Origin: Rebecca billardiae RCC1528
Lineage: Eukaryota; Protista; Haptophyta
Assembly: GCA_965240325.2 (NCBI GenBank)
Contig: OZ251226.1
Location: forward strand, 1,488,001-1,552,000
Direction of reading: 5' to 3'
DNA: 64,000 nucleotides
In this document: positions 1-58,086 of the stretch, one piece after another
Numbering within the stretch: position 1 is the first letter of the stretch
Layout of the letters: each line of letters begins with the position of its first letter
Position numbers and translations under genes: made by a program
Notes under the pieces: generated by a model
What the model saw: only the letters and a program-made list of their open reading frames with translations
What the model was told of the DNA's origin: nothing
Database searches by the model: none

Positions 1-3000
1 GTCTCCGCTCATGCGCGACATCTTCGAGCGCGCGGACATCTTCGACCTCGCCGACAACGCAGAGCGATGGCTCCCGGCTGCGACGAGGCGAGTCGCGGAG
101 CATGGGTCGGGCGCACGCGTGAGCCATGCGCGCGTCGCGCGCACCCGCAGCGGCGCGGGGCTGACCTCTCGGGCACAGCCGTGGGCGTTGGCGCGCACCT
201 TCGTCGTACACGTGCGTGTACTGGCGCATCGCGCTGTCCATCATCAGCCCCTCCTCCTGCGGGTACGTCTTGATCAGCGCCTTGTACGCATCGCGCGTGA
301 GCGAGTACACGACCGTCTCCGCGCCGCTCGCCGTGCGGCCGTTCTTAAAGTGGCGGATGCTGAAGGTGAAGGACATGCTGCCCACCGTGCTGCCCGACGA
401 GCGCACCTCGAGACCCTCGCCATCCTCAGTGGTCATGCCGACCAGGTTGAGCTGCATCTCGTCCTCGTACATCTCGATGCTGCCCGACTTGATGACGAAG
501 AGCTCGTTGCAGACCTCGCCCATGCGGAAGACGGTCGTCTCCGGCTCGATGCGACGCTCCTTGAGCACCGAGGCGAAGCGATCCTTGAAGCCCTCCGAGC
601 ACTCGGCGAGCAGCGAGCAGCCGCTGATGATGTGCCGGATGGTGTGCTTGGACACCTCGAGCTGGAGCGACATGGGGAGCATGTCGTACACCTGCTCCGA
701 CTGCACGGACGAGAGCGACGCGTCCTTCAGCCGGGCGTGGAAGAACGCCTCGATCTTCGCCTTGAGGTCGCCAGGCACGCGGATGTGCGCGACGTACGAC
801 TGCACGATCTCGAGCTGCGCGCGCTTGGCCACGATCTCGTCGTCCTGCTTCATCACGAGCGCCGAGATCTGGCCGACAGTCCACGCGTACACGGTCATGT
901 TCACGATCATCGCGACCACGAAGAAGAGCAGCTCGGTGTACGTCGCCGGGAGCTGCGTCAGCCCGAGCGACGTCAGCATGGACATGACGAAAAAGAGGCA
1001 CATCAGGTACTGGTTTGCAAACGTCACGGACGAGAGGCGGTCATTGCCGATGTGGTCGTGCTGCGAGTCCACCACTTCCTCATAGTAGCGCAGCTGCGTC
1101 CACCACGTCACCTCGGCCCCTTCGGCCAAGGTCGAGAACGCGCACAGGTTCCAGATGCACGAACCGAGGTGCGCCGCATACAGGAGCACCCCCAGGTACA
1201 TCTGCAGCCCGCTGCGGAGGTCGTCATCGGGACAACGCTTCCTCCACTTGCTGATCGCAGAGCGCAGGTACCGCATGTTGATCATGCGCAGCACGCGCAG
1301 CGTGTACGGCACGAAGGCGGGCGCACCCACGGCGAGCGCGAGGAAGTTGTGCGGCCAGCACGCAAAGCAGTCGAGCGGGAAGTCCCTCGCCAAGTAGTGC
1401 CTGGCGATGCCTGCAGGATCGTAGACAGTGACCGAGTGCTGGTTGATGCTGGACACGCGGAAGCGCAGTGCGATGCGCACGATGTAGAAGATGTCTGCGC
1501 CGATGCCCATGTACAGCAGCGCCTCTGACTGCTCCGCCCTGGTGCCGAAGCAGACGGCGACCGGGATCACAATTGAATCCCACGCAGTCACGTACAGGAA
1601 GAGCGTCTCGAAGAGGCCGAACGCCTTCGAATCGTGACGCACGATGAAGCTTGGCACGGCGGCGGCTGCGGCAGCTGCCGTTGCATCACCGCCGCCGCTG
1701 TTGGCGAGCGCAAGGAGCCGCGTGGACCGAGCCATGCCGAATGCAGCGGCCACGCGCAGGCTCATGCGGCCTTTCGCGTCCAGCTGTCCGAGCAGCGGGG
1801 TGTCCTCCTCAGCGGCACTTACCCGCGCGAGGTCCCTGTCGGCGGCGTCATCCTTGTGCGCGAAGAGGGCAGCGACCAGATCTCGCCATGTCACGTCGGC
1901 CGGCGGCTTCTCAACGACGGTTGTCGTGATGTTCGCAAGCTTGATGCCGTTGGAGAAACCCACCAGGCCGCCATCGCTGCTGCTGTCATCGCTGTCGTTT
2001 CCGTTGCCATCGGCGATGTCGGCCACAGGCGGCGCATGCGGCGTGATGTCCAGGCCGAGGGTTGTCAAGACCCAGTCCTCGAGCAACTCCTTCTTGGTGT
2101 CGGGAGGGATGGCGATGGTCTGCTTCACGTGGTACAGCAGGGCGCCCGTCTGCACAGGGCCGACCGGATCGATGCGCTGCGCTTCGATGTGGTTCTGGAT
2201 GTGGTTTGCCAAAGTAAGCGCCGCCCTGGGCGCGCACATGGCGGTTGCCAGCGCCTCCTTGGCTTGCGCCTCTTGTGCCTGCAAGAAGGCCTCCGGGTCG
2301 TTTGCGAGATCCAGCGTGCCTTCAGCGAGCGTAAGATCACCAGCGGAGGGTATGGCCTGACTCACACAGTTCGCGAGCAGCCACGAAGCCACGCCGACGT
2401 AGAACTGCGCCTCGGTGAGGAACCGCGCCGGGGGTCGCTCCTTCTGCAGCGAGCGACTCAAGTCGTCCGACGAACGCGACTGCGAGTCGCTGCGAATGGT
2501 CACGTCAGAGCCGCTCGCGGAGTCGTCCTCGCTTGACACCTCGCTTGAGTCCGAAGACGAGTTGGAGTCAGAAGGACTTGCTGCGATGCCAGTAGGCAAG
2601 GGCGAATCGTAGGAAGGCACCGATGCCTCACCATAGCCAACGACATCCTCCGTAGAGGGTGGCGGACCCGCCGCCGCGATGTCAGCCAGCATCTCGTCGT
2701 GGTGGTCGGCGAAGCGGTCCACGCCCTGCATGTCCAGCGCGGTCGGCGGCATCGCGGCGGTCGTCTCGAGCGCCTGCTTCAGCAGCTCGTCCTCCGTCTT
2801 GCCCATCTCCTTGGGCAGACGCTCCTTGCGGTGCTTCGGACCCACCTGATCCGAGCGGTGCGACACCTCCACCTCCGACGGCAGCAGCTGCAGCAGCTGA
2901 CCCAGCTTTGCCAACCGCTCCTTCATGTCGCTGCCGCCGCCAACCTCGAACTGCACGCCAAAGCACAGGCGGTACACGCCGTTCGAGTCGTGCACCGGAC

Positions 3001-6000
3001 GCATCGACAGCAGGTTCTGGAACGTCTCGCCGTTCTTGCGGTAGTTGGTGATCTTCACAAAGCAGTCCGCGCCGCGGCGGAGCGTGTCCTGGATGATCGC
3101 CACAGACGCCGGCTCCGTGCGCGGGCCCTGCAAGAAGCGGCAGTTCCGACCCTGCGCCTCGTGCTTCGCAAAGCCGGTCACGCGGCAGAAGTCGCGGTTC
3201 ACGAACAGCATCGGGTTGCCCGGCATCGCCATGTCCGACAGCACGATGCACGCCGGGAACGTCTCCGCGAACGCGACGAACGAGTGGATGAAGCCAGCCA
3301 TGTCCTCCGGGACCTTGTACTTGTCCCAGATCAGGTCCTTGCGCTGCTTGATGCGCTGGCCCGCCACAGAGGCCTCCACGATCGACTCGCACGCCGGCGA
3401 GCGCACGAACCGAGCAAGCGCGTCGCTCGCAAGCTTCTTGCCGATCTCGGACACCTTCTCCTCCACGGCGCGCATGTCCATCGACTTGGCCTGCGCAGAG
3501 CTCAGACCGAGGTGCTTCTCCAGCACGGTGCGCTTACGCACGTCGCGTGACGCGCCCGCCGCCATGCCGCTCAGCTTGCGCGCCTCCGACCAGAACTCGA
3601 GCTCGCGGTCCTCCTTCGTCTCCTTCAAGAACCCGCGGAAGGCGTCGTACGACTGCGGGTCCTCCGTCAGACGCTCCAGGCTCGTCTCAGAATCAAGCGT
3701 CCACTGCAGCTTCGTGAACAGCGACTGCGCCGAGCGGAACTGACGCTCCTTCGCGCCCTCGTCCACGTGCACCACGTCCGGCGTGAACGTCGATGGCTGC
3801 GCAGACGCCGGCATGCGCCGCGGAAGCAGCCCGCGCAGCGTCGACAGCGCCTGCTGCTCCTCCGCCGTCTGCTCCTCCGCGCACGACAGCACGCCCAACG
3901 AGTACCGGTACTCGCCGTTCGTGTCCATCACCGGCGTGAGCGACAGGTCGTTCGTGAAGCGAGAGCCGTTCTTGCGGTAGTTCGTCACCTTCACAAGAAG
4001 CTCTGTCTTCTTGCGCAGCGCGCGGACCATCTTCGACACGATGTTTGGCTCCGTCTGGTCACCCTGCAAGAAGCGGCAGTTCCGGCCCTCCACCTCGTAC
4101 TTCGGGTAGCCGGTCACGCGCGCGAAGCCGCCGTTGCAGTACATCACCGTCACGCCCGGGACCGTCACGTCGGTGATCGCCACCGCGATCTGCAGCGGCT
4201 CCACAGCCGCCTTGAGCGCGCCGAGCCACGTGCCGTCGCCCGCACGAGGTACCGAGCCGCGACCCTCGCCCGCCGCGCGCAGTGCCTCCAAGATCTCCAG
4301 CGTCGGCTGAGGAAGGCTGAACGCGCCGCCGCCCATGCCGCCGCCGCCCATGGCACTCATCGGCTGCTGCTGCTGCATCATCGGCTGCTGCTGCTGCATC
4401 ATCGGCTGCTGCTGCATCATCGGCTGCTGCTGCATCATCGGCTGCTGCATCATCATCGGCTGCTGCTGCTGCTGCATCGGCTGCTGCTGCATCATCGGCT
4501 GCTGCATCCCCATGCCCATCATCTGCGCGGGCGCGGCCGCCATCGTCGGCGCCATCGGCGTCTCCTCAAACGGCAGGCTGCCGCCAGAGATCTCCGCCAT
4601 CATCTCGTCGTGGTGGTCGGCGAAGCGGTCCTCGCCCTGCATGTCGAGCGCGGTCGGCGGCATCGTCGCACTCGACTCGAGCGCCTGCTTCAGCAGCTCG
4701 TCCTCCGTCTTGCCCATCTCCTTGGGCAGACGCTCCTTGCGGTGCTTCGGACCCACCTGATCCGAGCGGTGCGACACCTCCACCTCCGACGGCAGCAGCT
4801 GCAGCAGCTGACCCAGCTTTGCCAACCGCTCCTTCATGTCGCTGCCGCCGCCAACCTCGAACTGCACGCCAAAGCACAGGCGGTACACGCCGTTCGAGTC
4901 GTGCACCGGACGCATCGACAGCAGGTTCTGGAACGTCTCGCCGTTCTTGCGGTAGTTGGTGATCTTCACAAAGCAGTCCGCGCCGCGACGGAGCGTGTCC
5001 TGGATGATCGCCACAGACGCCGGCTCCGTGCGCGGGCCCTGCAAGAAGCGGCAGTTCCGACCCTGCGCCTCGTGCTTCGCAAAGCCCGTCACGCGGCAGA
5101 AGTCGCGGTTCACGAACAACATCGGGTTGCCCGGCATCGCCATGTCCGAAAGCACGATGCACGCCGGGAACGTCTCCGCGAACGCGACGAACGAGTGGAT
5201 GAAGCCAGCCATGTCCTCCGGGACCTTGTACTTGTCCCAGATCAGGTCCTTGCGCTGCTTGATGCGCTGGCCCGCCACAGAGGCCTCCACGATCGACTCG
5301 CACGCCGGCGAGCGCACGAACCGAGCAAGCGCGTCGCTCGCAAGCTTCTTGCCGATCTCGGACACCTTCTCCTCCACGGCGCGCATGTCCATCGACTTGG
5401 CCTGCGCAGAGCTCAGACCGAGGTGCTTCTCCAGCACGGTGCGCTTACGCACGTCGCGTGACGCGCCCGCCGCCATGCCGCTCAGCTTGCGCGCCTCCGA
5501 CCAGAACTCGAGCTCGCGGTCCTCCTTCGTCTCCTTCAAGAACCCGCGGAAGGCGTCGTACGACTGCGGGTCCTCCGTCAGACGCTGCAGGCTCGTCTCA
5601 GAATCAAGCGTCCACTGCAGCTTCGTGAACAGCGACTGCGCCGAGCGGAACTGACGCTCCTTCGCGCCCTCGTCCACGTGCACCACGTCCGCCGTGAACG
5701 TCGATGGCTGCGCAGACGCCGGCATGCGCCGCGGAAGCAGCCCGCGCAGCGTCGACAGCGCCTGCTGCTCCTCCGCCGTCTGCTCCTCCGCGCACGACAG
5801 CACGCCCAACGAGTACCGGTACTCGCCGTTCGTGTCCATCACCGGCGTGAGCGACAGGTCGTTCGTGAAGCGAGAGCCGTTCTTGCGGTAGTTCGTCACC
5901 TTCACAAGAAGCTCCTTCTTCTTGCGCAGCGCGCGGACCATCTTCGACACGACGATCGGCTCCGTCCGGTCGCCCTGCAAGAAGCGGCAGTTCCGGCCCT

Positions 6001-9000
6001 CCACCTCGTACTTCGGGTAGCCGGTCACGCGAGCGAAGCCGCCGTTGCAGTACATCACCGTCACGCCCGGCACCGTCATGTCCGTGATCGCCACCGCGAT
6101 CTGCAGCGGCTCCACAGCCGCCTTGAGCGCGCCGAGCCACGTGCCGTCGCCCGCACGAGGTACCGAGCCGCGACCCTCGCCCGCCGCGCGCAGTGCCTCC
6201 AAGATCTCCAGCGTCGGCTGAGGCAGGCTGAACGCGCCGCCGCCGCCGCCACCGCCCACGCCGCCGCCGCCCATGGCACTCATCGGCTGATGCGGCTGCA
6301 TCGGCTGCTGCTGCATCATCATCTGCTGCTGCTGCATCATCGGCTGCTGCATCCCCATGCCCATCATCTGCGTGGGCGCGGCCGCCATTGTCGGCGCCAT
6401 CGGCGTCTCCTCAAACGGCAGGCTGCCGCCAGAGATCTCCGCCATCATCTCGTCGTGGTGGTCGGCGAAGCGGTCCTCGCCCTGCATGTCGAGCGCGGTC
6501 GGCGGCATCGTCGCACTCGACTCGAGCGCCTGCTTCAGCAGCTCGTCCTCCGTCTTGCCCATCTCCTTGGGCAGACGCTCCTTGCGGTGCTTCGGACCCA
6601 CCTGATCCGAGCGGTGCGACACCTCCACCTCCGACGGCAGCAGCTGCAGCAGCTGACCCAGCTTTGCCAACCGCTCCTTCATGTCGCTGCCGCCGCCAAC
6701 CTCGAACTGCACGCCAAAGCACAGGCGGTACACGCCGTTCGAGTCGTGCACCGGACGCATCGACAGCAGGTTCTGGAACGTCTCGCCGTTCTTGCGGTAG
6801 TTGGTGATCTTCACAAAGCAGTCCGCGCCGCGGCGGAGCGTGTCCTGGATGATCGCCACAGACGCCGGCTCCGTGCGCGGGCCCTGCAAGAAGCGGCAGT
6901 TCCGACCCTGCGCCTCGTGCTTCGCAAAGCCGGTCACGCGGCAGAAGTCGCGGTTCACGAACAACATCGGGTTGCCCGGCATCGCCATGTCCGAAAGCAC
7001 GATGCACGCCGGGAACGTCTCCGCGAACGCGACGAACGAGTGGATGAAGCCAGCCATGTCCTCCGGGACCTTGTACTTGTCCCAGATCAGGTCCTTGCGC
7101 TGCTTGATGCGCTGGCCCGCCACAGAGGCCTCCACGATCGACTCGCACGCCGGCGAGCGCACGAACCGAGCAAGCGCGTCGCTCGCAAGCTTCTTGCCGA
7201 TCTCGGACACCTTCTCCTCCACGGCGCGCATGTCCATCGACTTGGCCTGCGCAGAGCTCAGACCGAGGTGCTTCTCCAGCACGGTGCGCTTACGCACGTC
7301 GCGTGACGCGCCCGCCGCCATGCCGCTCAGCTTGCGCGCCTCCGACCAGAACTCGAGCTCGCGGTCCTCCTTCGTCTCCTTCAAGAACCCGCGGAAGGCG
7401 TCGTACGACTGCGGGTCCTCCGTCAGACGCTGCAGGCTCGTCTCAGAATCAAGCGTCCACTGCAGCTTCGTGAACAGCGACTGCGCCGAGCGGAACTGAC
7501 GCTCCTTCGCGCCCTCGTCCACGTGCACCACGTCCGCCGTGAACGTCGACGGCTGCGCAGACGCCGGCATGCGCCGCGGAAGCAGCCCGCGCAGCGTCGA
7601 CAGCGCCTGCTGCTCCTCCGCCGTCTGCTCCTCCGCGCACGACAGCACGCCCAACGAGTACCGGTACTCGCCGTTCGTGTCCATCACCGGCGTGAGCGAC
7701 AGGTCGTTCGTGAAGCGAGAGCCGTTCTTGCGGTAGTTCGTCACCTTCACAAGAAGCTCCTTCTTCTTGCGCAGCGCGCGGACCATCTTCGACACGATGT
7801 TCGGCTCCGTCCGGTCGCCCTGCAAGAAGCGGCAGTTCCGGCCCTCCACCTCGTACTTCGGGTAGCCGGTCACGCGAGCGAAGCCGCCGTTGCAGTACAT
7901 CACCGTCACGCCCGGCACCGTCATGTCCGTGATCGCAACCGCGATCTGCAGCGGCTCCACAGCCGCCTTGAGCGCGCCGAGCCACGTGCCGTCGCCCGCA
8001 TGAGGTACCGAGCCGCGACCCTCGCCCGCCGCGCGCAGTGCCTCCAAGATCTCCAGCGTCGGCTGAGGCAGGCTGAACGCGCCGCCGCCGCCGCCGCCGC
8101 CCATGCCGCCGCCGCCCATGGCACTCATCGGCTGCTGCGGCTGCATCGGCTGCTGCTGCTGCTGCATCGGCTGCTGCTGCTGCATCGGCTGCTGCTGCTG
8201 CTGCATCGGCTGCTGCTGCATCATCGGCTGCTGCATCCCCATGCCCATCATCTGCGCGGGCGCGGCCGCCATCGTCGGCGCCATCGGCGTCTCCTCAAAC
8301 GGCAGGCTGCCGCCGGAGATCTCCGCCATCATCTCGTCGTGGTGGTCGGCGAAGCGGTCCTCGCCCTGCATGTCGAGCGCGGTCGGCGGCATCGTCGCAC
8401 TCGACTCGAGCGCCTGCTTCAGCAGCTCGTCCTCCGTCTTGCCCATCTCCTTGGGCAGACGCTCCTTGCGGTGCTTCGGACCCACCTGATCCGAGCGGTG
8501 CGACACCTCCACCTCCGACGGCAGCAGCTGCAGCAGCTGACCCAGCTTCGCCAACCGCTCCTTCATGTCGCTGCCGCCGCCAACCTCGAACTGCACGCCA
8601 AAGCACAGGCGGTACACGCCGTTCGAGTCATGCACCGGACGCATCGACAGCAGGTTCTGGAACGTCTCGCCGTTCTTGCGGTAGTTGGTGATCTTCACAA
8701 AGCAGTCCGCGCCGCGACGGAGCGTGTCCTGGATGATCGCCACAGACGCCGGCTCCGTGCGCGGGCCCTGCAAGAAGCGGCAGTTCCGACCCTGCGCCTC
8801 GTGCTTCGCAAAGCCCGTCACGCGGCAGAAGTCGCGGTTCACGAACAACATCGGGTTGCCCGGCATCGCCATGTCCGAAAGCACGATGCACGCCGGGAAC
8901 GTCTCCGCGAACGCGACGAACGAGTGGATGAAGCCAGCCATGTCCTCCGGGACCTTGTACTTGTCCCAGATCAGGTCCTTGCGCTGCTTGATGCGCTGGC

Positions 9001-27000: not shown

Positions 27001-30000
27001 TCACGCCCGGCACCGTCATGTCCGTGATCGCCACCGCGATCTGCAGCGGCTCCACAGCCGCCTTGAGCGCGCCGAGCCACGTGCCGTCGCCCACATTCGG
27101 CATGCTTCCTTGGCCCTCTCCTGCAGCGCGAAGTGCCTGGAGGATCTCTGTCGTCTGCATCGGGAGCATGCTCTCCGTGGGCATGTTCTGGCTGTAGCCG
27201 ATCCCGTTGGTGACGCTGTTCGCTGCAATCGATGGTGCGGTGGGCTGGGAGTACGCGTGCCCTTCGCCTTGCTGGCTCTGCTGCACCGCCAGAAAGGGCT
27301 GCTGAGCCGCATCGCTGTTCAGCTGGCCATTTTGCTGCGCGCCAGCATACCCATTGGCTGCAGCCCAGGGAAGAAAAGTCGACACGTGCTCCTCGTCTTC
27401 TGGCGCAGGTATTTCTGCTATGTAGTCACCGTCAGCTGCGATGTCCGCGAGCATCTCGTCGTGGTGGTCGGCGTACCTGTCCACGCCCTGCATGTCGCTC
27501 GCCGCCTCGGGTACAACTTCTCGAGCCTCGAGCGCGCGCTGCAGCAGCTCGTCCTCCGTCTTGCCAAAGTCGGCGTTGGATGTCCGTTTGCGGTGCTTTG
27601 GCCCGACCCGCTCTGATCTGTGCTGCACCTCGACCTCCGACGGCAGCAGCTGCAGCAGCTGACCCAGCTTCGCCAACCGCTCCTTCAAGTCGCTGCCGCC
27701 CGCCACCTCGAACTGCACGCCAAAGCACAAGCGGTACACGCCGTTCGAGTCGTGCAGCGGGCGCATCGACAGCAGGTTCTGGAACGTCTCGCCGTTCTTG
27801 CGGTAGTTGGTGATCTTCACGAAGCAGTCCGCGCCGCGACGGAGCGTGTCCTGGATGATCGCCACAGACGCCGGCTCCGTGCGCGGGCCCTGCAAGAAGC
27901 GGCAGTTCCGACCCTGCGCCTCGCGCTTCGCGAAGCCGGTCACGCGGCAGAACTCGCGGTTCACGAACAGCATCGGGTTGCCCGGCATCGCCATGTCCGA
28001 CAGCACGATGCACACCTTGAACGTCTCCGCGAACGCGACGAACGAGTGGATGAAGCCAGACAGGTCATCCGGCACCTTGTACTTGTCCCAGATCAGGTCC
28101 TTGCGCTGCTTGATCCGCTGGCTGCCCACGGCCGCATCGACGATCGGCTCGCACGCTGATGACTTGATGAACTCGGGCAGCACCTCGCGAGCCAGCTTCA
28201 TCTTGATCTCAGCGGCCCTCCTGTCCACGCTCGAGAAGTCGAGTGCCTTGGCCTGCGCCGTACTCAGCCCGAGGTACTTCTCGCAGATCGTGCGCTTGAG
28301 GATGTCGCGGCTTGCCCCAGACATGCCGCCGAGCTTGCGCGACTCCAGCCAGAATTCGAACTCGTTCGCCTCCGCCGTGCCGGACAGGTACGAACGCAAC
28401 GCTGCCAGTGCATTCGAGTCTACCACAAGCCAGTCCAAACAAGCTTGGGCTTCCAGCGTCCACTGCAGCTTCGTGAAGAGCACCTGAGCAGCACGGAACT
28501 GCTTGTCCTTCGCCATGTCGTTCACAACGACGTCGGGAGCGAAAGTCTGCGGCTGGGCGTCCGCGGGCATGCGCCGCGGCAGCAGCTCGCGCAGCGCCGA
28601 CAGCGCCTGCTGCTCCTCCGCCGTCTGCTCCTCCGCGCACGACAGCACGCCCAGCGAGTACCGGTACTCGCCGTTCGTGTCCATCACCGGCGTGAGCGAC
28701 AGGTCGTTCGTGAAGCGAGAGCCGTCCTTGCGGTAGTTGGTCACCTGCACGTGCAGCTCCTTCTTCTTGCGCAGCGCGCGGACCATCTGCGAGACGATGT
28801 TCGGCTCCGTCTGCTCGCCCTGCAAGAAGCGGCAGTTCCGGCCCTCGACCTCGTGCTTCGGGTAGCCCGTCACGCGCGTGAAGCCGTCGTTGCAGTACTG
28901 CACGATCACGCCCGGCACCGTCATGTCCGTGACGGCGACCGCGAACGGCAGGGCATCGACCGCCGCCTTGAGCGCGCCGAGCCACGTGCCGTCACCCGCT
29001 GTCGGCATGCCGCCACGGCCGTCGCCCGCGCCCAACAGAGCCTGCAAAAGGTCGATCGTGTCTTGGGGCAAGGCCGATGCCTCACCCTCGAAGTTGTCGA
29101 GTCCAGCGTCGCCTTCTTGCGCGATGTCTGCGAGCATCTCGTCGTGGTGGTCGGCGTACCTGTCCACGCCCTGCATGTCGCTCGCCGCCTCGGGTACGAC
29201 TTCTCGAGCCTCGAGCGCGCGCTGCAGCAGCTCGTCCTCCGTCTTGCCAAAGTCGGCGTTGGATGTCCGTTTGCGGTGCTTTGGCCCGACCCGCTCTGAT
29301 CTGTGCTGCACCTCGACCTCCGACGGCAGCAGCTGCAGCAGCTGACCCAGCTTCGCCAACCGCTCCTTCAAGTCGCTGCCGCCCGCCACCTCGAACTGCA
29401 CGCCAAAGCACAAGCGGTACACGCCGTTCGAGTCGTGCACCGGACGCATCGACAGCAGGTTCTGGAACGTCTCGCCGTTCTTGCGGTAGTTGGTGATCTT
29501 CACGAAGCAGTCCGCGCCGCGACGGAGCGTGTCCTGGATGATCGCCACAGACGCCGGCTCCGTGCGCGGGCCCTGCAAGAAGCGGCAGTTCCGACCCTGC
29601 GCCTCGCGCTTCGCGAAGCCGGTCACGCGGCAGAACTCGCGGTTCACGAACAGCATCGGATTGCCCGGCATCGCCATGTCCGACAGCACGATGCACACCT
29701 TGAACGTCTCCGCGAACGCGACGAACGAGTGGATGAAGCCAGACAGGTCATCCGGCACCTTGTACTTGTCCCAGATCAGGTCCTTGCGCTGCTTGATGCG
29801 CTGGCTGCCCACGGCCGCATCGACGATCGGCTCGCACGCTGATGACTTGATGAACTCGGGCAGCACCTCGCGAGCCAGCTTCATCTTGATCTCAGCGGCC
29901 CTCCTGTCCACGCTCGAGAAGTCGAGTGCCTTGGCCTGCGCCGTACTCAGCCCGAGGTACTTCTCGCAGATCGTGCGCTTGAGGATGTCGCGGCTCGCCC

Positions 30001-33000
30001 CAGACATGCCGCCGAGCTTGCGCGACTCCAGCCAGAATTCGAACTCGTTCGCCTCCGCCGTGCCGGACAGGTACGAACGCATGGCAGACAAAGCCTTTGC
30101 ATCCTGCACGAGCCGATCCAAGCTCGCTTCGGCGTCGAGCGTCCACTGCAGCTTCGTGAAGAGCACCTGAGCAGCACGGAACTGCTTGTCCTTCGCCATG
30201 TCGTTCACAACGACGTCGGGAGCGAAAGTCTGCGGCTGGGCGTCCGCGGGCATGCGCCGCGGCAGCAGCTCGCGCAGCGCCGACAGCGCCTGCTGCTCCT
30301 CCGCCGTCTGCTCCTCCGCGCACGACAGCACGCCCAACGAGTACCGGTACTGGCCGTTCGTGTCCATCACCGGCGTGAGCGACAGGTCGTTCGTGAAGCG
30401 AGAGCCGTCCTTGCGGTAGTTCGTCACCTGCACGTGCAGCTCCTTCTTCTTGCGCAGCGCGCGGACCATCTGCGAGACGATGTTCGGCTCCGTCTGCTCG
30501 CCCTGCAAGAAGCGGCAGTTCCGGCCCTCGACCTCGTGCTTCGGGTAGCCGGTCACGCGCGTGAAGCCGTCGTTGCAGTACTGCACGATCACGCCCGGCA
30601 CCGTCATGTCCGTGACGGCGACCGCGAACGGCAGGGCATCGACCGCCGCCTTGAGCGCGCCGAGCCACGTGCCGTCGCCCACGCTCGGCATCGCGCCCTT
30701 GCCATCACCTGCTGCGCGAAGCGCGAGTAAGATGTCCGCCGATGGCCGCGGAACGCCCGCCGAAGGGATGTCGGCGCCGACACGAGAGGCAACGACGCCC
30801 ATAGGGCTGGATGGAGCGAGGTGGGAAGGCGCAGTCTGTGGTGCAGCAATGGCCGGGGCACCAACAGCTCTGGAGGGCACGCCCGTGCCAGTCTGTGGCG
30901 TCTCGTCGAACGGCAGGCTGCCGCCCGTGATCTCCGCCATCATCTCGTCGTGGTGGTCGGCGAAGCGGTCGGCGCCCTGCATGTCCTGAGCTCCGCTGGG
31001 CATCACTGCGATCTCCTCCATGGCCACCTTGAGCATCTCGGCCTCGGACTTGCCCATCTCCTTGGGAAGTCGCTCCTTGCGGTGCTTCGGCCCGACCCGC
31101 TCCGATCTGTGCTGCACCTGCACCTCGGACGGCAGCAGCTGCAGCAGCTGACCCAGCTTCGCCAACCGCTCCTTCATGTCGCTCCCGCCCGCCACCTCGA
31201 ACTGCACGCCAAAGCACAGGCGGTACACGCCGTTCGAGTCGTGCACCGGACGCATCGACAGCAGGTTCTGGAACGTCTCGCCGTTCTTGCGGTAGTTGGT
31301 GATCTTCACAAAGCAGTCCGCGCCGCGACGGAGCGTGTCCTGGATGATCGCCACAGACGCCGGCTCCGTGCGCGGGCCCTGCAAGAAGCGGCAGTTCCGC
31401 CCCTGCGCCTCGTGCTTCGCAAAGCCCGTCACGCGGCAGAACTCGCGGTTCACGAACAGCATGGCGTTGCCAGGCATCGCCATGTCCGAAAGCACGATGC
31501 ACGCCGGGAACGTCTCCGCGAACGCGACGAACGAGTGGATGAAGCCAGCCAGGTCCTCCGGCACCTTGTACTTGTCCCAGATCAGCTCCTTGCGCTGCTT
31601 GATGCGCTGGCTGCCCACGGCCGCATCGACGATCGGCTCGCATGCGGGCGAGCGCACAAACCGCGGCAGCGCGTCGCCTGCAAGCTTCTTCCCGAGTTCG
31701 ACCACTTTGCGCGCGACACCGTCCATGTCCATCGCCTTCGCCTGCGCGCTCGTCATCTTGAGGTACTTCTCGCAGATCTTGCGCTTGTGCACGTCGCGCG
31801 AGCCGCCCTTCATGCTGGCCAGCTTGCGCGCCTCGATCCAGAACTCGAGCTCGTTCTCCTCACCGGTCGGCTTCAGGAACGAGCGGAGCGCGTTGAGTGC
31901 TGAAGAGTCATCCGCCAAGCGCGTAAGTGTCGCATCGGCGTCGAGCGTCCACTGCAGCTTGGTGAAGAGCAGCTGCGCGTCGCGGAACTGCCTGTCCTTC
32001 GCCTCGTCGTCGACAGCCTCCTCCTTCGCGAAGGCGGTCGGCTGTGCAGCTGCGGGCATGCGCCGCGGCAGCAGCTCGCGCAGCGCCGACAGCGCCTGCT
32101 GCTCCCCGGTGGACTGCGTCTCCGCGCACGACAGCACGCCCAACGAGTACCGGTACTCGCCGTTCGTGTCCATCACCGGCGTGAGCGACAGGTCGTTCGT
32201 GAAGCGAGAGCCGTCCTTGCGGTAGTTCGTCACCTGCACGTGCAGCTCCTTCTTCTTGCGCAGCGCGCGGACCATCTGCGAGACGATGTTCGGCTCCGTC
32301 CGGTCGCCCTGCAGGAAGCGGCAGTTCCGGCCCTCGACCTCGTGCTTCGGGTACCCCGTCACGCGCGTGAAGCCGGCGTTGCAGTACATCACCGTCACAC
32401 CCGGCACCGTCATGTCCGTGATCGCCACCGCGATCGGCAAGGTGTCGACCGCCGCCTTGAGCGCGCCGAGCCACGTGCCATCTCCGGCAGTCGAGACATC
32501 GCTGGCCCCGTCGGCCGTAGCCTGGAGGGCTCGGAGGAGCTCCACCGAGGCGGACGGCAGCTGGAAGTCCGTTGGATCAGCATGGCTGCCGCCGGACGCA
32601 GCCGGTACTGGAGCGAGCTCGACGCCGTTGATCTCCGCGAGCATCTCGTCGTGGTGGTCGGCGTAGCGGTCGGCGCCCTGCATGTCCTGAGCTCCGCTGG
32701 GCATCACCGCGATCTCCTCCATGGCCACCTTGAGCATCTCGGCCTCGGACTTGCCCGTCTCCGCGGGCAGCCGCTGCTTGCGGTGCTTCGGCCCGACCCG
32801 CTCCGACCTGTGCTGCACCTCGACCTCCGACGGCAGCAGCTCCAGCAGCTGACCCAGCTTCGCCAACCGCTCCTTCAGGTCGCTCCCGCCCGCCACCTCG
32901 AACTGCACGCCAAAGCACAGGCGGTACACGCCGTTCGAGTCGTGCACCGGACGCATCGACAGCAGGTTCTGGAACGTCTCGCCGTTCTTGCGGTAGTTGG

Positions 33001-36000
33001 TGATCTTCACGAAGCAGTCCGCGCCGCGACGGAGCGTGTCCTGGATGATCGCCACAGACGCCGGCTCCGTGCGCGGGCCCTGCAAGAAGCGGCAGTTCCG
33101 ACCCTGCGCCTCGTGCTTCGCAAAGCCGGTCACGCGGCAGAAGTCGCGGTTCACGAACAGCATCGGGTTGCCGGGCAGCGCCATGTCCGACAGCACGATG
33201 CACGCTGGGAACGTCTCCGCGAACGCGACGAACGAGTGGATGAAGCCAGCCATGTCCTCCGGGACCTTGTACTTGTCCCAGATCAGGTCCTTGCGCTGCT
33301 TGATCCGCTGGCTGCCCACGGCCGCCTCGACGATCGGCTCGCATGCGGGCGAGCGCACAAACCGCGGCAACGCGTCGCTCGCGAGCTTCTTGCCAAGCTC
33401 AGCCACCCTCTGGTCGACGCCGTCCATGTCCATCGCCTTCGCCTGCGCGCTCGTCATCTTGAGGTACTTCTCGCAGATCTTGCGCTTGTGCACGTCGCGC
33501 GAGCCGCCCTTCATGCTGGCCAGCTTGCGCGCCTCGATCCAGAACTCGAGCTCGTCGTCCTCGCCGGTCTCCTTGAGGAACGAGCTGAACGCATCGCGAG
33601 CGTGCTGATCGGTCGTCAGCCGCTCCAGGCTCGACTCCGAGTCGAGCGTCCACTGCAGCTTGGTGAAGAGCAGCTGCGCCGAGCGAAACTGCCTGTCCTT
33701 CGCCTCGTCGTCGACAGCCTCCTCCTTCGCGAAGGCGGTCGGCTGTGCAGCTGCGGGCATGCGCCGCGGCAGCAGCTCGCGCAGCGCCGACAGCGCCTGC
33801 TGCTCCTCCGCCGTCTGCTCCTCCGCGCACGACAGCACGCCCAGCGAGTACCGGTACTGGCCGTTCGTGTCCATCACCGGTGTGAGCGACAGGTCGTTCG
33901 TGAAGCGAGAGCCGTTCTTGCGGTAGTTCGTCACCTGCACGTGCAGCTCCTTCTTCTTGCGCAGCGCGCGGACCATCTGCGAGACGATGTTCGGCTCCGT
34001 CTGCTCGCCCTGCAGGAAGCGGCAGTTCCGGCCCTCGACCTCGTGCTTCGGGTAGCCGGACACGCGCGTGAAGCCGTCGTTGCAGTGCATCACCGTCACA
34101 CCCGGCACCGTCATGTCCGTGATCGCCACCGCGATCTGCAGTGGCTCGACCGCCGCCTTGAGCGCGCTGAGCCACGTGCCGTCACCCACGACGGGCATGC
34201 CGCCCTGTCCATCCCCGGCTGCGCGGAGGGCGCGGAGGATGTCCACGGTCGGCCTTGGCAACGAAGCGGACCCGATTTCGTCGGGGCCTGCGCTCGGCCC
34301 GCTCGTTGCGCCATCGTCATCATCGATGGCCTGCGCTGCCATATTCGCCGCCGCCATGACCTTCGTCGCGTCCTTAAGATGCGTGCGCAGCGACTCGAGC
34401 TCCTCGCTGCCCACCTCCGTCTGCAGCTGCCTCACGTCGCGCAGGCGGATCGTGTTCTTCTTCTTCGGCGCGAAGACGCGATGCAGGGTTGTCAGGACGT
34501 ACGCTGTGCTCGCCAACGCCTCGAAAGCGCTGGCGCTCTCGCCCTCTTCCGCGGCCGCCTCGCCCGTGCTGCGCACGTTGCGGCCGGCCAGAATGCCGAT
34601 GAAGCGCTTCGAGCAGAAGAGCACGACGCAGCCGAGGTCGGAGATGAAGAAGGGCGCCGTCGACTCGGACGATGGCTGGATGTTCGTCATGCCGGCGAGC
34701 GCGTTGAGCGAGGCGGCGAGCACGCTTGGGCGACGCGCAGAAACGCTCGGGCGGCGGGGCGCTGCAGGTGATGCGCTGCCAGCGTCAGCCATGGGCTGGC
34801 TGCCGCGGCGCGCCGTGCCGCTCACGTGCTGCGTGACGGCGAAAAGCGAGCTGCCGACAATCGAGTTGGTGCGCAACGCGCGTCGCAGAGCGTGATCCTC
34901 GGGTGGCACCGGAGCGTCATGCGGTGATGTGCTCGGCCGGTGCGGCGCACTGTCGCCAGCAAACGCCCTGAGCCCGGTGTAGATCTCGTCCATCACCGCA
35001 TTGGCCTCGGCGTAGGTCAGCTGGCACTCATTCATCAGGATGTCTTCGAGTGCGAGATTCTCTTGCCGCAGGCGCTCGTTGATTGGCAGCGAGTCGCGCG
35101 CCTCCGCCGAGAGCTTCTTCATGAAGAGGTCACGCAGCTTGGCGAGGCCCTCCTCCGCGCGCGGCAGTCGGAGGATGGAGCGCACGAAGAGCTTCGCCGC
35201 CTCCCCGGATGCGGCCACCGCTTCTTCTTCCTCGGCGTTGTCGTCAATCGAGCCCGGCGGTGTTTCGCCATCGAAGTCCGACTCCTGGGACGACATGTCG
35301 TCGAGATCGGACTGGCTGCAGCTGTCGCCGTCGGAGTCCTGCGTCTCCTTCGAGTAGTTGGCAATCCAGTCGTCCGTCGCCTTGTCGAGATAGCGTGCGA
35401 GAATGCGTGCGGCTCGGGTAAACATGTGCACATGCTTGCTGAGCGCCTTGAGGCTGACGGTGATCGGCTGCCGCAGCGCCTGCTTGGTCTCGCGCAGCGT
35501 CATCCGTCGCTCGCCGTGCTCCTTGAGCTTGCGGTCGATGCGGTACAGATTGACCGACTTCGCCTCCTCGTAAGCTTCGCGTAGCTCGTCATCGTCTGCG
35601 TAGCCCTCGGGCAGGTGCGCTCCGCACATCTGTACGATGAGCGCGGCCGTGTCGAGGTTGGTCTCGAGCGCGGGCACGAGCGGCGACGCGCCCCAGCGGT
35701 CGAGCGCCATCACGTCCGCGCGCGCGGCGACAAGCACAGCCGCCCCCGAGATGGCGCCCGCAGATGCGACGCGGTGGAAGGCGGTGCGTCCGTCGTAATC
35801 ACTGGCGTCCACCCCCACGCCCATGTCGACGAGGAAGCGCAGAATGTCGACATCCGATGCGACCGCTGCGTCGCGCAGGGCCTTCTCCATGCGCACCGGG
35901 TCCGCGCGCGAGTTGGCCTCGGCGAGCATGCGCGCGACGTGGAGGTGCTGGTTCTGGATGGCGTCGTCGATCGGCTTGCGCCCGCGCTTGTCCTCCGCGT

Positions 36001-36625
36001 TCACGTCCGCGAGGTGCGACATCAGGTGCTCGACGACGCGCACGTTGCCGTCCGCCGCGGCGATGTGCAGCGCGGTGCGGTCGTCGTAGTTCTTTGCCTG
36101 CACGTCGATGCCGTACGCGAGGATCATCGACATGTACGTGAGGTCGCCGTCACTCGCCGCCTTGTGCATCCACGCGGCGGGGTGCTCGACGTCGATCTCC
36201 GCGCCGAAGCTGCTCAGCACGCTCGCCACGTTGTCATGCCGCATATCAATCGCGTCGCGCATCGGCGTGCAGCCCCAGCGGTCCTTGGCGTTGACGTCGG
36301 CGCCGAGCTCGCACAGCAGCTGCACCACCTTGAAGCTGCCGTCGGCGGCGGCGAGGTGCATCGTCGTGCGCGCGTCGTAGCCCGACATGTTCAGGTCGAA
36401 GCCGCGGCCGGCGAGCGTGCGCACAGTCTCGACGTCGCCCTGCATCGCCGCCGCCGACATCTGCGCGAAGGCCGCCTGGTTGCGCTCGATGATGGTCTGG
36501 CGGATCTTCTCCTTGAGCTCCTCCGCCTCCTCGTCCGCGTTCTTGGCATCGTCGTCGTCAGCATCACCGCCAGCACCGCCGGCGGCACCGGTGCCAGCTG
36601 CGCCGGCAGCGCCACCGCTTGCAGT

Positions 36626-36691
<66 letters not shown>

Positions 36692-38617
36692 GCCGGCAGT
36701 GTAGCCGATCTGCGTGATGTCGTTGCCGTGCTTGTCGAGCCCAAACTTGCGCAGCAGGCTCGACGTGATCATGTCGGCCTGGTCGGGGTACGACTGGATG
36801 ATGTTCTCGTACTCGGAGACGGTGAGGGCGAGCAGCGTGACGTAGCCGGCGGAGGAGGCCATCACCGTGTACGGCTGGTGGATGCCGAGGAAGAAGGCGA
36901 GCTCGCCCACCACTTGGCCCGGCCCGAGGTCGGCGAGGATGGTCGCCACGTTCTCGTCGCCCTTGCGCACGTAGAGGGTGCCGCCCACGCACCACAGCAG
37001 CTCGGTCGCGCCCTCGCCCTGGAAGAAGAGAGGCTCTCCGGGCATGACAAAGCGCTCGCGCACGGCGAGGACGATCTGGCCGAGGAACTGCGGCGAGCAG
37101 CCGTGCAGCACCCACGTGGCCTGCATCTCGCGCAGGTACTGCGCCGACGCGACCTGCGTGCGCAGCGAGGGCGGCATCTGCTGGAACACCTTGCCCGAGC
37201 TGGACGAGCTCTTGTGGTGCTGTGCGGCGCCGACAGATGCGCGCGCCGGGGGCCGGGGCGCGAAGCGGAGCGTGTGAGCCCGCGCGGCGCGCGCGGGGGG
37301 AGCGCATGCTGGCCGCGCAGCACGGGGCGCGCGGCGTACCTGGAACTCGAAGTGCGCGCGCACGCGCCCCGCGACCGCCGTCGGCAGCTTGTTGGCGCGC
37401 GTGTACCCGTCGACGGCCTTCATCAGCTCCTTGAAATGGACCGTCGACTCGTCCACGCGCACGAGGTAGTGGAAGAGAGTACCGAGCACGAAGGCGTAGA
37501 AGACGATCTGCAGGATCATGATGACGATGGCGAAAGACGCCTCGGGCTCGCGCGCCGTGAGCTGCACCGAGCCGTAGCCCATCGACGTGATGCCCGCCCA
37601 GCCCATGTACGACGAGAGCAGGTACGCCTGCCAGCCCGTAGCGTGCATCGGGTCGAAGTCGTCGTTGTGTGTCCACTGCGCGGGCCACGAGGGCAGCTTG
37701 AGCGCCTCGGTCTGGTCCACCGCGCGCTCGGAGAGGAGCCACCACACGCAGCTCACCCAGTGCGGCACCGAGACGAGCACGAGCACAAACTTGAACGAGG
37801 CGAAGAAGGTGACGTTGGTCGTGAGGTCCGTCGACATGCGGTGCATGTGCGCGAGCAGGTCGTTGACGCGCGCACAGCGCACGACCTGGCCAAGCGTCCA
37901 CACCCACTGGAAGCCGAGGAAGATGAAGAGTGCGCGCCCCACGTGCAGAGTGGCGATGATCGCGACGTCGACCAACATGCGACGGCACGTCGGTGGCTGC
38001 TGCCCAACGCGCTCGAAGCGCTTCTTGTACCGCACGCGCGCACACATGTATGCGAACTCGTACAGGTCGATCACGATGTCGACGAGGATGCCGCCGGGGG
38101 AGGCGAGCAGCATCGACGGGAACGCCACGCGCACGGGGATAAGCAGCTCCTCCAGCGCGAGAAACCACAGGCGCGCCGCCGCGAAAGCGCGCAGGAATCC
38201 CATCCTCTCTGCGGCCGCGACTGTTCGGTTGGCGTCATCGGATGCTGGGTCGACCGCGATCGGCTTGTCGTCGTGGCCGACGAGGACCGTTCGCCACGTG
38301 ACGTGCCGCTCCCCGGGCGCTTGCGTGGGCTCGGGGCTTGCGTCCACCGCCTGCCCACGCGTCGGCATCTTCGCCGGAGAGTCCGGAAGCCGCAGAATGC
38401 CCTTGGTGGTAGGCTGCGTGCTGCTGGCATCCTCCTGCGCGCTCTGCAGGCCGAGAGCGGAGCGTGCGCGGTTCGCTGCGCTGCGCGATTTGTCCTTGGC
38501 CTGCTCAAAGCTGCGCGTGCCCAGCAGCGAGGATGGCCTGTCCTCGCCGCCCTTTACGAGGGGCGACGTCTCGCGCCCGGTGCTCGGCGGGCCGCGGCGA
38601 GTGTCGGGAGAGCTCAT
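1..38617 (-). CDS. Giant channel-photoreceptor fusion, 3' partial: 6TM K+ channel-CNBD-ankyrin-(LOV-RGS-LOV)x17-6TM channel-CNBD; predicted join(38617..37340, 37219..199, 77..<1), >=12,792 aa in window
   Basis: Minus frame whose codons start at plus positions 2 mod 3. The ORF track lists no minus ORF in this frame below the in-frame stop at 38795-38797, as expected if it is open to the edge. First ATG is at 38617 (gccacgATG). All repeat periods are multiples of 3. Manual translation gives recognisable domains along its length. Confidence 0.9.
78..198 (-). other. Predicted intron, 121 nt, phase 1
   Basis: GAAG|GTGCGC donor at 198 and TCGCAG acceptor at 78. The spliced product continues YDE-A-GSHRSALSARSKMSARSKMSRMSGD. 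Confidence 0.65.
230..829 (-). other. Domain: C-linker and CNBD-like domain 2
   Basis: VYDMLPMSLQLEVSKH...LLAECSEGFKDRFASVLKERRIEPETTVFRMGEVCNELFVIKSGSIE...YSLTRDAYKALIKTYP. Confidence 0.85.
830..1640 (-). other. Domain: second 6TM ion-transport module with non-canonical pore
   Basis: S1 FETLFLYVTAWDSIVIPVAVCF; S2-S3 IARHYLARDFPLDCFACWP; S4 LRVLRMINMRYLR; S5 YAAHLGSCIWNL; pore QYLMCLFFVMSMLTSLGLTQLP; S6 ELLFFVVAMIVNMTVYAWTVGQISALV. Confidence 0.85.
2689..34260 (-). repeat. Coding tandem array of 17 LOV(B)-RGS-LOV(A) units, 1683-1920 bp period
   Basis: GRNCRFLQG of LOV-A at low coordinates 3125, 5036, 6881, 8765, 10634, 12536, 14456, 16376, 18296, 20216, 22136, 24056, 25976, 27887, 29570, 31376, 33077. 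LOV-B at 4061, 5972, 7817, 9701, 11570, 13472, 15392, 17312, 19232, 21152, 23072, 24992, 26912, 28817, 30500, 32306, 34007. Between them SLQRLTEDPQSYDAFRGFLKETKEDRELEFWSEARKL...LASDALARFVRSPAC matches the RGS-box pattern. Confidence 0.95.
35640..36480 (-). other. Domain: ankyrin repeats (~9, in three triplets)
   Basis: GYDARTTMHLAAADGSFKVVQLLCELGADVNAKDRWGCTPM; NYDDRTALHIAAADGNVRVVEHLMSHLADVNAEDKRGRKP; DYDGRTAFHRVASAG...DRWGASP. Resembles the ankyrin tail of plant AKT1/SKOR-type channels. Confidence 0.9.
36626..36694 (-). repeat. (GGC)n coding repeat, Gly14-Ser-Gly8 linker
   Basis: gcc run on the plus strand between CNBD1 and the ankyrin repeats. Confidence 0.9.
36770..37449 (-). other. Domain: C-linker and cyclic-nucleotide-binding(-homology) domain 1 (span includes intron 37220-37339)
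   Basis: HFEFQ/HHKSSSSSGKVFQQMPPSLRTQVA...LHGCSPQFLGQIVLAVRERFVMPGEPLFFQGE...LGPGQVVGELAFFLGIHQPYTV. Confidence 0.85.
37220..37339 (-). other. Predicted spliceosomal intron, 120 nt, phase 0, stop-free
   Basis: CAG|GTACGC donor and GCACAG acceptor. Removal restores C-linker HFEFQHHK; retention inserts 40 Arg/Ala/Pro-rich residues. Confidence 0.75.
37450..38200 (-). other. Domain: N-terminal 6TM ion-transport module with K+ selectivity filter
   Basis: S5 FKFVLVLVSVPHWVSCVWWLL; pore AYLLSSYMGWAGITSMGYGSV (ITSMGYG at 37571-37591); S6 FAIVIMILQIVFYAFVLGTLFHYL. CNBD-channel (KCNH / plant Shaker-like) layout. Confidence 0.88.
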
Positions 38618-38990
38618 CGTGGCGAGGAGAGAAGGCGAGCTGACAAGCGCCGGGCAGGGCGGCTGGCCCAGATCACCCGCAGGAGATCGCCTCGGCTCTC
38701 CTCCTTTTCCAGACGGGACCGCGGCCGATCGTGATTCGTGAATTCTCGCGCCGACTAGAGACCTCCTCGCCCGCGGAAGCAAGCTTTCGACGGCCTAGGT
38801 AGGCGGTTCGGGCAAGTTCGTCAATGTCGCCGAGACTAGCGGGCGTATGTTTCGGAGCCCGGGCGAAGCCGCGGCGGCCCGGCGAGTTCTGCAGGCGAAA
38901 AAAGCAGCTGTTACGATACCGTTTGACAAGACAGACTCACGAACAGCTATTTCAAGGGCGTTCCCGGGATCCTGCCACACGCTCCCGAAA

Positions 38991-39021: not shown

Positions 39022-40052
39022 ACCGGACTGGCGCGGGCCGTAATCAAATGTACCCGCTTCAAATAGAGGAAGCCAATTTCAATAGGAACGCGGTTCCGAT
39101 TTGGCGTATGACCAGTGCGGGGAACGCCCCTGGCATCCAAAGGACCATCAACCATAACTTGATGGGAGCCGAACGGACGCGTGAGGTCTGATTTGGTTGA
39201 TGGTTACTTTAGCTATGACTTACTACTTTACAGTTACTGCTGCGCTTATTGGCCACTACAATCACGGACAGGTGTCGTCAGCGTCGTTTTCTCACTCACG
39301 CAACATGCATGAACACACCGTCGGAGCCGTCGTTTCACGATGAACAATGTCAGACACGATTGCAGGGGCGATACCTAGTGCTGAAGTGCAGGGTCGCGCC
39401 GGAGATCGGCGTCACGGGCTCACGGCGGGTCGGAGCCAGCTCTCCAGCCAGGCAACACGATCAGCCAGATGATTACCTTACCGACTAGGAACCGAGCAGA
39501 GGGGCTGCGGCCGGTGCACTTCCTGGTAGTAAGTGGCAGACTCCAGGCGGGGGTCGATGCCGGCGGTCGCGGAGAGACGGTCTCGGAGTCGGAGAGTGTG
39601 CACACATCTGTGGTCCGATGCAGGCGGGTCCCCCTGCCCAGCTTGGCGCCTGATGAGTCGTCGCGAGCAGCCCGGTCGGCCGGTCGTCGTCGTGGCTCCC
39701 CGGCCCCGCCATCAGCCCGACAAATAAGGTGATGATGCCGAACCGGACTCGGGCCCGGCCCGACCGCCGCCCCCGGACCGGGTCCGGGCCGACGACGGCA
39801 ACGAGTGCCGCGGGCCCAGACCTAGCCCTAGGGCTACCATCCAAGTACCAGGCCTAGATACAGCCGCTCATGACAGCCACGCCTCATAATGAGACAAAGT
39901 CGTCGTCATCGGCATTGCCAATGCGTCGTCGTCGTCATTGATCTCACTCTCTCTCTCTCTCTCTCTCATCTCTATATATATTCGTCATCTGCTTACGATC
40001 ATCATAGACATACTACGTCTTAGTCAACCGAATTATCATCATCATAGACGGT

Positions 40053-42931: not shown

Positions 42932-43192
42932 CTATCAAGGCAGGGCATGACCCAATAACAAGGTCCAAAATCAAGAGTGAACATATGGTGCAAATAAGCC
43001 CAGGACTGACTCGGGTTACCCAAAACCGTCACACGGAAGTCCCAGCACATGACCCGTATCCTGGCATTGGCAACCAGCATTACTGACTCCAATTCACTCA
43101 TGCACACAGATGCACAAACAATACCAAGCCCAAAATCACTCATAATCCAAGCTTAGTCCTCACAGACGAGCGCATATTGGATTGAGGGGGGG

Positions 43193-57891: not shown

Positions 57892-58086
57892 CGCCCCGAT
57901 CGACGGCCGAGATGGCGCTCTACAGTCTACACTGACCACCGCAGCACTTGTTCACCAAGCCCGGCATCGTTGTCCGGGGAGGGGCCTCCCCTGTCCGGCG
58001 GTCGGTCGTTGGTCTGGTCTGGGTCTCAAGTGTGGGCGCGGGAGCGCGGCACCGCCGCGACGGGGCCGCGCTCTCTGGTGGAAAGG

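Follow-up and report, generated by a model that had tools for sequence, protein, structure and literature searches.

A 64,000-nt stretch of the genome of the haptophyte Rebecca billardiae (C8:1488001-1552000; below, the window) carries on its minus strand a giant gene that is predicted to encode a single polypeptide of ~12,800 residues. From the N to the C terminus, the protein consists of module 1, with six transmembrane (6TM) segments, a cyclic nucleotide-binding domain (CNBD) plus ankyrin repeats; a linker with 17 RGS-LOV-LOV units; and module 2, with a second 6TM core and CNBD. We propose, with a probability of roughly 60%, that the protein belongs to a family of two-repeat CNBD channels, that two chains dimerise to form a pore from two copies of each module (2+2), and that the array in the linker acts on gating or on G-protein signalling.

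The gene lies in a stop-free frame on the minus strand (window 38794..2), which has 12,931 codons in the window and 12,933 codons over the whole open frame. Sequence flanking the locus placed the end of the frame (...AHERRLG, then stop) 2 codons to the left of the window edge. The window has a G+C content of ~67%, and at this base composition a random frame is expected to reach a stop every ~44 codons (our own arithmetic); the frame is therefore not due to chance. The four motifs quoted in the first-pass annotation of this DNA (ITSMGYGS, QVVRCARVND, MLTSLGLTQ and LRVLRMINMRYLR) were all recovered on the minus strand in this one frame. That annotation had also suggested that further modules might follow outside the window. 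The adjacent sequence spoke against this: because the stop sits 2 codons past the edge, there is no module beyond module 2. A hydropathy scan of the whole protein confined the hydrophobic segments to modules 1 and 2. Since both modules have an even number of transmembrane helices and there is no other hydrophobic segment, the whole linker should be cytosolic. Periodic open reading frames (ORFs) of 478-567 residues on the plus strand were discarded as antisense artefacts of the GC-rich coding repeat. The coding region is as follows.

2..38617, minus strand: giant-gene coding region; it starts at the first in-frame Met (ORF codon 60) and extends to the edge of the window, with 2 further codons and the stop outside; at least one intron.

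All searches and both structure models described below used the unspliced reading, with the exons around the intron left unjoined. Module 1 (ORF residues ~200-700) matched the plant channels SKOR, GORK and AKT1 in the PDB with E values of 4e-27 to 1e-16. An AlphaFold2 (AF2) model built from the family alignment contained six transmembrane helices, a pore helix, a long S6/C-linker and a beta-roll, with a predicted local distance difference test score (pLDDT) of 63. Foldseek aligned this model to SKOR (7e-16) and AKT1 (~1e-15), in both cases as whole CNBD-channel subunits over ~500 columns. The filter belongs to the family motif T-[AS]-[ML]-G-Y-[GA] found in the paralogues. The canonical GYG filter and the weakly charged S4 that had been attributed to module 1 were thus both confirmed, and the low S4 charge is kept in the family. 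The features of module 1 are listed here.

37475..38197, minus strand: transmembrane core S1-S6 of module 1 (ORF residues ~200-440), from hydropathy, PDB alignment, AF2 helices and Foldseek.
37859..37888, minus strand: S4 of module 1, QVVRCARVND, with only 2 Arg; 10 paralogues all keep the Q, R and R.
37568..37591, minus strand: selectivity filter of module 1, ITSMGYGS (GYG type); SMGYGS aligns to TVGYGD of SKOR.
36788..37054, minus strand: CNBD of module 1 (Pfam cNMP_binding, 1.5e-9; alignment to the SKOR CNBD).
35747..36466, minus strand: ankyrin repeats after module 1 (Pfam Ank_2, 7.7e-32, and related models).

The best sequence and fold matches of module 1 were thus plant Shaker channels (AKT1, SKOR, GORK), with which it shares the GYG filter, the C-linker, the CNBD type and the ankyrin repeats. 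Its CNBD carries QPYTV where CNBDs that bind cyclic nucleotides have R-T/S-A, and QPYTV at this phosphate-binding position is a trait of plant Shaker channels. These channels are, however, stand-alone subunits of ~700-900 residues with a KHA domain, whereas module 1 is the N-terminal part of a far longer chain. In addition, its S4 has only two Arg and the flanks of its filter (T-S-M-G-Y-G-S) are atypical. No KHA domain was present among the Pfam matches at E <= 0.01 in the giant-gene protein. Full membership in the plant Shaker group was rejected, as there was no KHA match and the module does not stand alone.

Module 2 (residues ~12,395-12,870) matched Pfam Ion_trans (3.9e-10) over positions 3-233 of the 241 in the profile. 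Only module 2 of the giant protein matched this profile; module 1 paralogues match Ion_trans_2. Against the PDB, module 2 aligned from S1 to the CNBD with hERG (3e-24), HCN1 (4e-20) and EAG1, the E values ranging from 3e-24 to 5e-20. The AF2 model, again from the family alignment, had six transmembrane helices, a pore helix, S6/C-linker and a beta-roll (pLDDT 77). Its Foldseek matches were GORK, CNGA1 and HCN1 (~1e-21), whole subunits over ~500 columns. The first-pass annotation had named transmembrane prediction and profile searches as the checks that could overturn its claim that module 2 is a 6TM channel; hydropathy, Pfam, AF2 and Foldseek all upheld the claim. Its two further observations, MLTSLGLTQ in place of TTVGYGD and an S4 more charged than that of module 1 (4 Arg versus 2), were likewise correct, and the contrast in S4 charge is conserved in the family. 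Both modules therefore have the features of the CNBD superfamily, that is, 6TM with S4, a pore helix and filter, and a C-linker and CNBD after S6. The features of module 2 are listed here.

860..1612, minus strand: transmembrane core S1-S6 of module 2 (ORF residues ~12395-12645), from Pfam, PDB alignment, hydropathy, AF2 and Foldseek.
1262..1300, minus strand: S4 of module 2, LRVLRMINMRYLR, with four Arg; family consensus LRLxRLxNxRY.
953..979, minus strand: selectivity filter of module 2, MLTSLGLTQ; TSLGLTQ aligns to TSVGFGN of hERG.
263..556, minus strand: CNBD of module 2 (Pfam cNMP_binding, 7.4e-7; AF2 beta-roll).

The second pore had been described as degenerate. We do not share this view: the filter follows the motif [TS]-x-L-G-x-x-Q-[LVM]-P-[AS]-N in the paralogues and in other species, and this conservation rules out a decaying second pore. 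Judged from its sequence, the module 2 filter is an alternative motif, conserved in the family and similar to the short filter of the CNG type. It is short, with G-x-T followed by Pro, as compared with TIGE(T) of CNG channels (TIGE; PMC7576140). It differs from CNG channels in having Leu at the position of the pore Glu, and from KCNH and HCN channels, with which module 2 aligns from S1 to the CNBD, in having neither GYG nor GFG. Unlike KCNH channels, module 2 has no adjacent N-terminal eag-PAS domain; the nearest PAS fold is the last LOV domain, ~440 residues upstream.

An alternative reading is that repeat 2 does not conduct. It could be a silent subunit or a voltage or ligand sensor that modulates the repeat-1 pore, or could anchor the LOV/RGS array in the membrane. 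Its filter has neither the Tyr nor the second Gly of GYG and no acidic residue, and paralogues differ in the two residues that follow the filter Gly (LT, MP, AG, SG, LA, AS, VA). By our own motif reading, moreover, the CNBD, which retains R-T-A-S at the phosphate-binding position, has G-S in place of the usual G-E. Nevertheless, we regard a non-conducting repeat 2 as distinctly improbable. The family alignment shows strong conservation of the pore helix, of the filter scaffold (T-x-L-G, Q-x-P-x-N) and of S6; the S4 charges are conserved as well, and a pure anchor would not retain such features.

A search of the 72-Mb assembly (41 contigs) with each module yielded 42 module-1-type loci and 42 module-2-type loci, together with one weak unrelated match. 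A module-2-type locus was present downstream on the same strand for 42/42 module-1-type loci (e.g. C1:2190519-2196713, C13:442547-448939 and C22:1199207-1205662), and no unpaired copy of either type was seen. The spacing between the modules was 4.65-7.46 kb at 39 loci and 23.8, 36.5 and 39.9 kb at the three genes with LOV arrays. Short members of the family have both modules in one open frame of 2,300-3,400 residues, with the layout channel(GYG)-CNBD-ANK-linker of ~1,100 residues-Ion_trans-CNBD and without LOV domains. Of the three long genes, one is the giant gene, another is its neighbour (C8:1555846-1596715) and the third lies on contig 3. For the neighbour, module 1, module 2, the intron site described below and LOV motifs were confirmed. 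The contig 3 gene (C3:3524630-3550473; L044-L046) has a frame of 8,009 residues with 20 LOV motifs and module 2, while its module 1, in which GYA replaces GYG, lies in a separate frame of 676 residues.

A quick tree of 25 module 1 and 25 module 2 sequences separated the two types with 100% support in the Shimodaira-Hasegawa-like approximate likelihood ratio test (SH-aLRT). The sub-branching of the two halves was mirrored; for example, the sub-clades giant gene + neighbour, C22+C1, C7+C13, C11+C39, P0008+P0009 and P0023+(P0025+P0031) recurred on both sides. On the evidence of these loci, of the tree and of the homologous transcripts described next, the pairing of the modules is an obligate and ancient feature of the family.

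Two-module relatives with the same order of repeats were also found in Diacronema lutheri (e.g. KAG8466681), Rhodelphis marinus, Bryopsis sp. and MMETSP transcripts, the Diacronema lutheri proteins being the closest relatives outside this genome. MMETSP transcripts of 2,647 and 3,020 residues, marked complete, hold both modules, so in these homologues both modules are on one mRNA. An 8,490-nt contig from JGI 3300016954 (L043), a transcript of another organism, combines four LOV motifs with a channel of the module 2 type, a CNBD and an ankyrin tail. The channel (57% identical) has the filter LSTLGLAQLP, and in this variant the ankyrin repeats come after the module of the second type.

Two-repeat tandem CNBD channels were first reported in 2020 (Sci Rep), bioinformatically and only in dinoflagellates and oomycetes (SAR), with filters near TVGY/FG in nearly all; their repeat clades were read as a sign of co-evolution and specialisation (PMC7576140). 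Like the present proteins, these channels have two 6TM-CNBD repeats per chain, and the repeats form separate clades with matching branching. In contrast to that SAR-only group, the present family occurs in a haptophyte and has relatives in Diacronema, Rhodelphis and Bryopsis. It also differs in the ankyrin repeats of repeat 1, in a linker of at least 1,100 residues and in the LOV/RGS arrays of three members, and the TVGY/FG filter criterion does not hold for repeat 2, which has T-S-L-G-L-T-Q (family motif L-G-x-x-Q-x-P-x-N). Other matches with two stretches, 1,200-1,800 residues long and with GYG or GFG in both repeats, resemble the previously described tandem type. Two-repeat CNBD channels as such were thus already known from bioinformatics; new here are the family-wide pairing, the conserved repeat-2 filter and the LOV/RGS array in the linker.

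By analogy with other tandem channels, a shared 2+2 pore would be the likeliest assembly. In a dimer of chains, each chain would contribute a repeat-1 and a repeat-2 pore domain to the lining of a single pore of two-fold symmetry, and the CNBDs, four in all, would make up a mixed gating ring. With its mixed filter, such a pore is unlikely to be strictly K+-selective; its selectivity would probably be relaxed as compared with a pure GYG pore. The first-pass annotation had already put forward a 2+2 pore, and the obligate pairing, the mirrored branching, the two-module transcripts and the precedent of tandem channels (PMC7576140) fit this proposal. Mixed 2+2 pores exist in the superfamily, as exemplified by the AKT1-AtKC1 heterotetramer (PDB 7wm1, 7xuf), although there the partner is encoded by a separate gene, whereas here the partner subunit is fused into the same chain. 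CNGK, the K+-selective CNG channel of sperm (PMC4749565), similarly consists of concatenated 6TM-CNBD repeats that form a pseudo-tetramer. There, a single chain with four GYG-type repeats and short linkers makes up the pore; the present protein has two dissimilar repeats, and a pore would take two chains. Membership in the CNGK group was rejected, since the chain has only two hydrophobic modules and the frame ends after module 2.

A different assembly would have four chains and two pores: a K+-type pore made of the four repeat-1 modules and a non-selective, CNG-like pore made of the four repeat-2 modules, the two being tethered by the LOV/RGS linkers. Each repeat is a complete 6TM, C-linker and CNBD unit, and such units assemble as homotetramers in known channels; the linker is of great length (~1,100 residues in short paralogues, ~11,500 in the giant gene), and the repeat-2 filter has CNG length and CNG-like G, T and P positions. 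Still, we consider this arrangement unlikely. Neither type of repeat occurs alone across the 42 loci, and the repeats co-diverge, for which independent pores would have no need. In the tandem channels K2P, TPC and CNGK, too, the repeats share one pore.

Between the modules lies the array. Each of its 34 LOV domains has the motif GRNCRFLQ, and it also contains 17 RGS-like domains. The spacings between successive GRNCRFLQ motifs alternate between 310-312 and 251-328 residues, and each unit of ~640 residues has two Pfam PAS_9 matches with an RGS match between them. The 68 LOV domains given in the first-pass annotation are accordingly not the number in the chain, where 34 such motifs were counted in frame with two PAS_9 matches per unit. 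In four of the six units tested, Pfam RGS exceeded its cut-off of 23.9 bits (37.5, 32.4, 27.3 and 26.8 bits); the remaining two scored 21.5 and 18.6 bits. Coverage was limited to the first 63-90 of the 117 profile positions. The LOV domains matched a solved LOV histidine kinase, aureochrome and phototropin with E values of 2e-26 to 1e-20. They have the canonical photosensor sequence with the cysteine motif for the flavin adduct. At the I-beta position, LOV-B has the signalling Gln of classic LOV domains (GVQ) and LOV-A has Leu (GVL) in all 17 units, which suggests that each unit contains two functional LOV classes. The array and the linker around it are located as follows.

2927..34171, minus strand: array of 17 units, each LOV-A, RGS-like domain, LOV-B and low-complexity spacer, from motif counts and Pfam.
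34160..35797, minus strand: ancestral inter-module linker, proximal part (blastp P0006, P0001, P0004, L034 and L035, E 1e-30 to 1e-44).
1613..2926, minus strand: ancestral inter-module linker, distal part, before module 2 (blastp L034 (3e-11), P0012, P0011, P0004 and P0006).

As both flanks are homologous to the linker of the LOV-free short members, the array was inserted into a linker that already existed. In the module-2 tree the three array genes form one group (100% SH-aLRT), and it is in the linker of the giant gene and its two close paralogues that the array, of a type resembling helmchrome, was acquired. Helmchrome, a brown-algal flagellar photoreceptor (RGS-LOV-LOV x2), likewise has units of RGS plus two canonical LOV domains. 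However, it is soluble, with 2 units and no membrane domain, as against 17 units between two channel modules here, and one LOV domain per unit here has Leu at the I-beta Gln position. Helmchrome-like LOV+RGS transcripts have been described in haptophytes, without a link to channels (PMC8017926). A search for giant homologues (5,400-17,000 residues) made with two LOV units returned one, P0159 (ENA contig, 26,467 nt), a protein of 7,579 residues with 14 LOV motifs and a CNBD and without a channel module. Giant LOV arrays are thus predicted to exist also without channels.

At the DNA level, identity reaches 99-99.9% among units 5-16, which repeat with a period of 1,920 bp. Each of units 1-4 shares 79-94% with its successor, and unit 17 shares 86-88% with units 16 and 7. 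The near-identical units 5-16 differ from each other by point changes and small indels in the spacer.

The gene has at least one intron, which lies inside module 1. Between ...HFEFQ and HHKSSSS..., the giant gene and its neighbour encode ~40 extra residues that are absent from 8 paralogues. This stretch has the features of an intron (CAG|GTACGC...CACAG|CAC), and the AF2 pLDDT of the module 1 model drops to 24-30 across it.

37220..37339, minus strand: in-frame GT..AG intron of 120 nt, stop-free, at the C-linker/CNBD junction of module 1.

With this 120-nt intron removed, the mature chain would be ~40 residues shorter than the open frame. At the same site the neighbouring gene has an intron of 112 nt that shifts the frame, and because this intron breaks the frame, the neighbour's module 1 appears in a separate frame of 908 residues. 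The introns of the two genes are 82% identical and the flanking exons 97-98%.

The identity between these two genes is patchy: the module-1 core is ~80% identical to that of the neighbour at the protein level, yet the exons around the intron are 97-98% identical in DNA (window 37340-38227 compared with L010, window 36900-37219 with L042). This hints at possible gene conversion between the two giant paralogues.

The near-identity of units 5-16, the presence of an intron, which makes splicing matter, and the fact that the locus is known from genomic sequence alone leave room for an artefact: the modules could be transcribed separately, the array could be inflated by mis-assembly of the 1,920-bp repeat, or the gene could be a decaying pseudogene. 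We give very little weight to this explanation. None of the 12,933 codons is a stop, not even in units 1-4 and 17, which have diverged (identity of 79-94% to the following unit or to unit 7), and the point changes and spacer indels among the near-identical units indicate that the assembler resolved them. The same architecture recurs in the neighbouring gene and on contig 3, and complete transcripts of homologues contain both modules.

In the proposed channel, blue light would drive formation of a flavin-cysteine adduct in the LOV domains. The adduct would then act on channel gating through the tethered cytosolic ring, or on local G-protein signalling through the RGS domains. More tentatively, and with the odds against it as a whole, the protein could be a natural flavin-based light-regulated cation channel with an asymmetric 2+2 pore (two GYG and two G-L-T-Q filters), in which the 68 LOV domains of each dimer control gating or local G-protein signalling. 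It might then be a blue-light receptor for the photobehaviour of pavlovophytes or haptophytes, and the 42-gene family a new and widespread heteromeric class of two-repeat CNBD channels.

Several observations weigh against the 2+2 channel with a light-responsive linker. The linkers of 1,100-11,500 residues are far longer than those of K2P or TPC, so packing of the repeats into the same pore is not forced, and module 2 alone, with its CNG-like filter length, could form a pore of its own. The giant gene is known here from its genomic frame, the transcripts coming from homologues; given at least one intron, further hidden in-frame introns and alternative starts could also be present. Since 12 of the 17 units are nearly identical, the copy number depends on the assembly, and an open frame in that region says little about selection. 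The ratio of non-synonymous to synonymous substitutions (dN/dS) against paralogues was 0.41-0.59 for both modules; this counts in favour of the proposal, but values of 0.4-0.6 show moderate constraint only. The module 1 model is of low confidence. Finally, a search of the protein collection for giant homologues (5,400-17,000 residues) with a module-1-like start returned none, a weak blank in view of the length filter and poor gene models.

A "LOV-voltage-dependent potassium channel" has been noted bioinformatically in Pavlova sp. RCC6257 (bioRxiv 10.1101/2025.06.20.660589). As far as its description allows comparison, this protein, like ours, has LOV fused to a protein of the K-channel type in a pavlovophyte haptophyte. 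The main text of that preprint, as far as it was searched, mentions it briefly and contains no two-module architecture, array, RGS or filter analysis. Our literature search likewise returned no description of LOV arrays between two pore modules or of the repeat-2 filter motif.

To our knowledge, all known light-gated channels are retinal-based, and the only LOV-controlled K+ channels we know of are engineered fusions such as BLINK1. If the proposal is correct, a natural protein with 34 canonical LOV domains wired between two pore modules would link flavin photochemistry to membrane current in a new way and supply parts for optogenetics. The family is also a natural experiment: over 42 duplications in this genome, the pairing of a GYG pore domain with a conserved non-GYG one has been obligate, and the GYG/non-GYG pairing is common to Diacronema, Rhodelphis and Bryopsis. 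The short clonable paralogues (2,300-2,700 residues) make the question of the mixed filter directly testable.

Elsewhere in the window, ORFs at 40286-42931 (plus strand) and 43570-46134 (minus strand) had no Pfam match. Positions 40000-44000 have a lower G+C content (55-60%) and a strong AT skew (+0.17 to +0.21), unlike the rest of the window. Two further genes were recognised; like the 72-Mb assembly in 41 contigs, the ankyrin repeats and the GT..AG introns, they mark the DNA as eukaryotic, and a bacterial origin was rejected on these grounds.

47434..57939, minus strand: VPS13-like ORF of 3,501 residues with VPS13 N-terminal and VAB domains.
57787..59703, plus strand: calcium-binding mitochondrial carrier with EF-hand and three Mito_carr repeats.

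Across 52-58 kb of the window, the G+C content rises to 72-80%.

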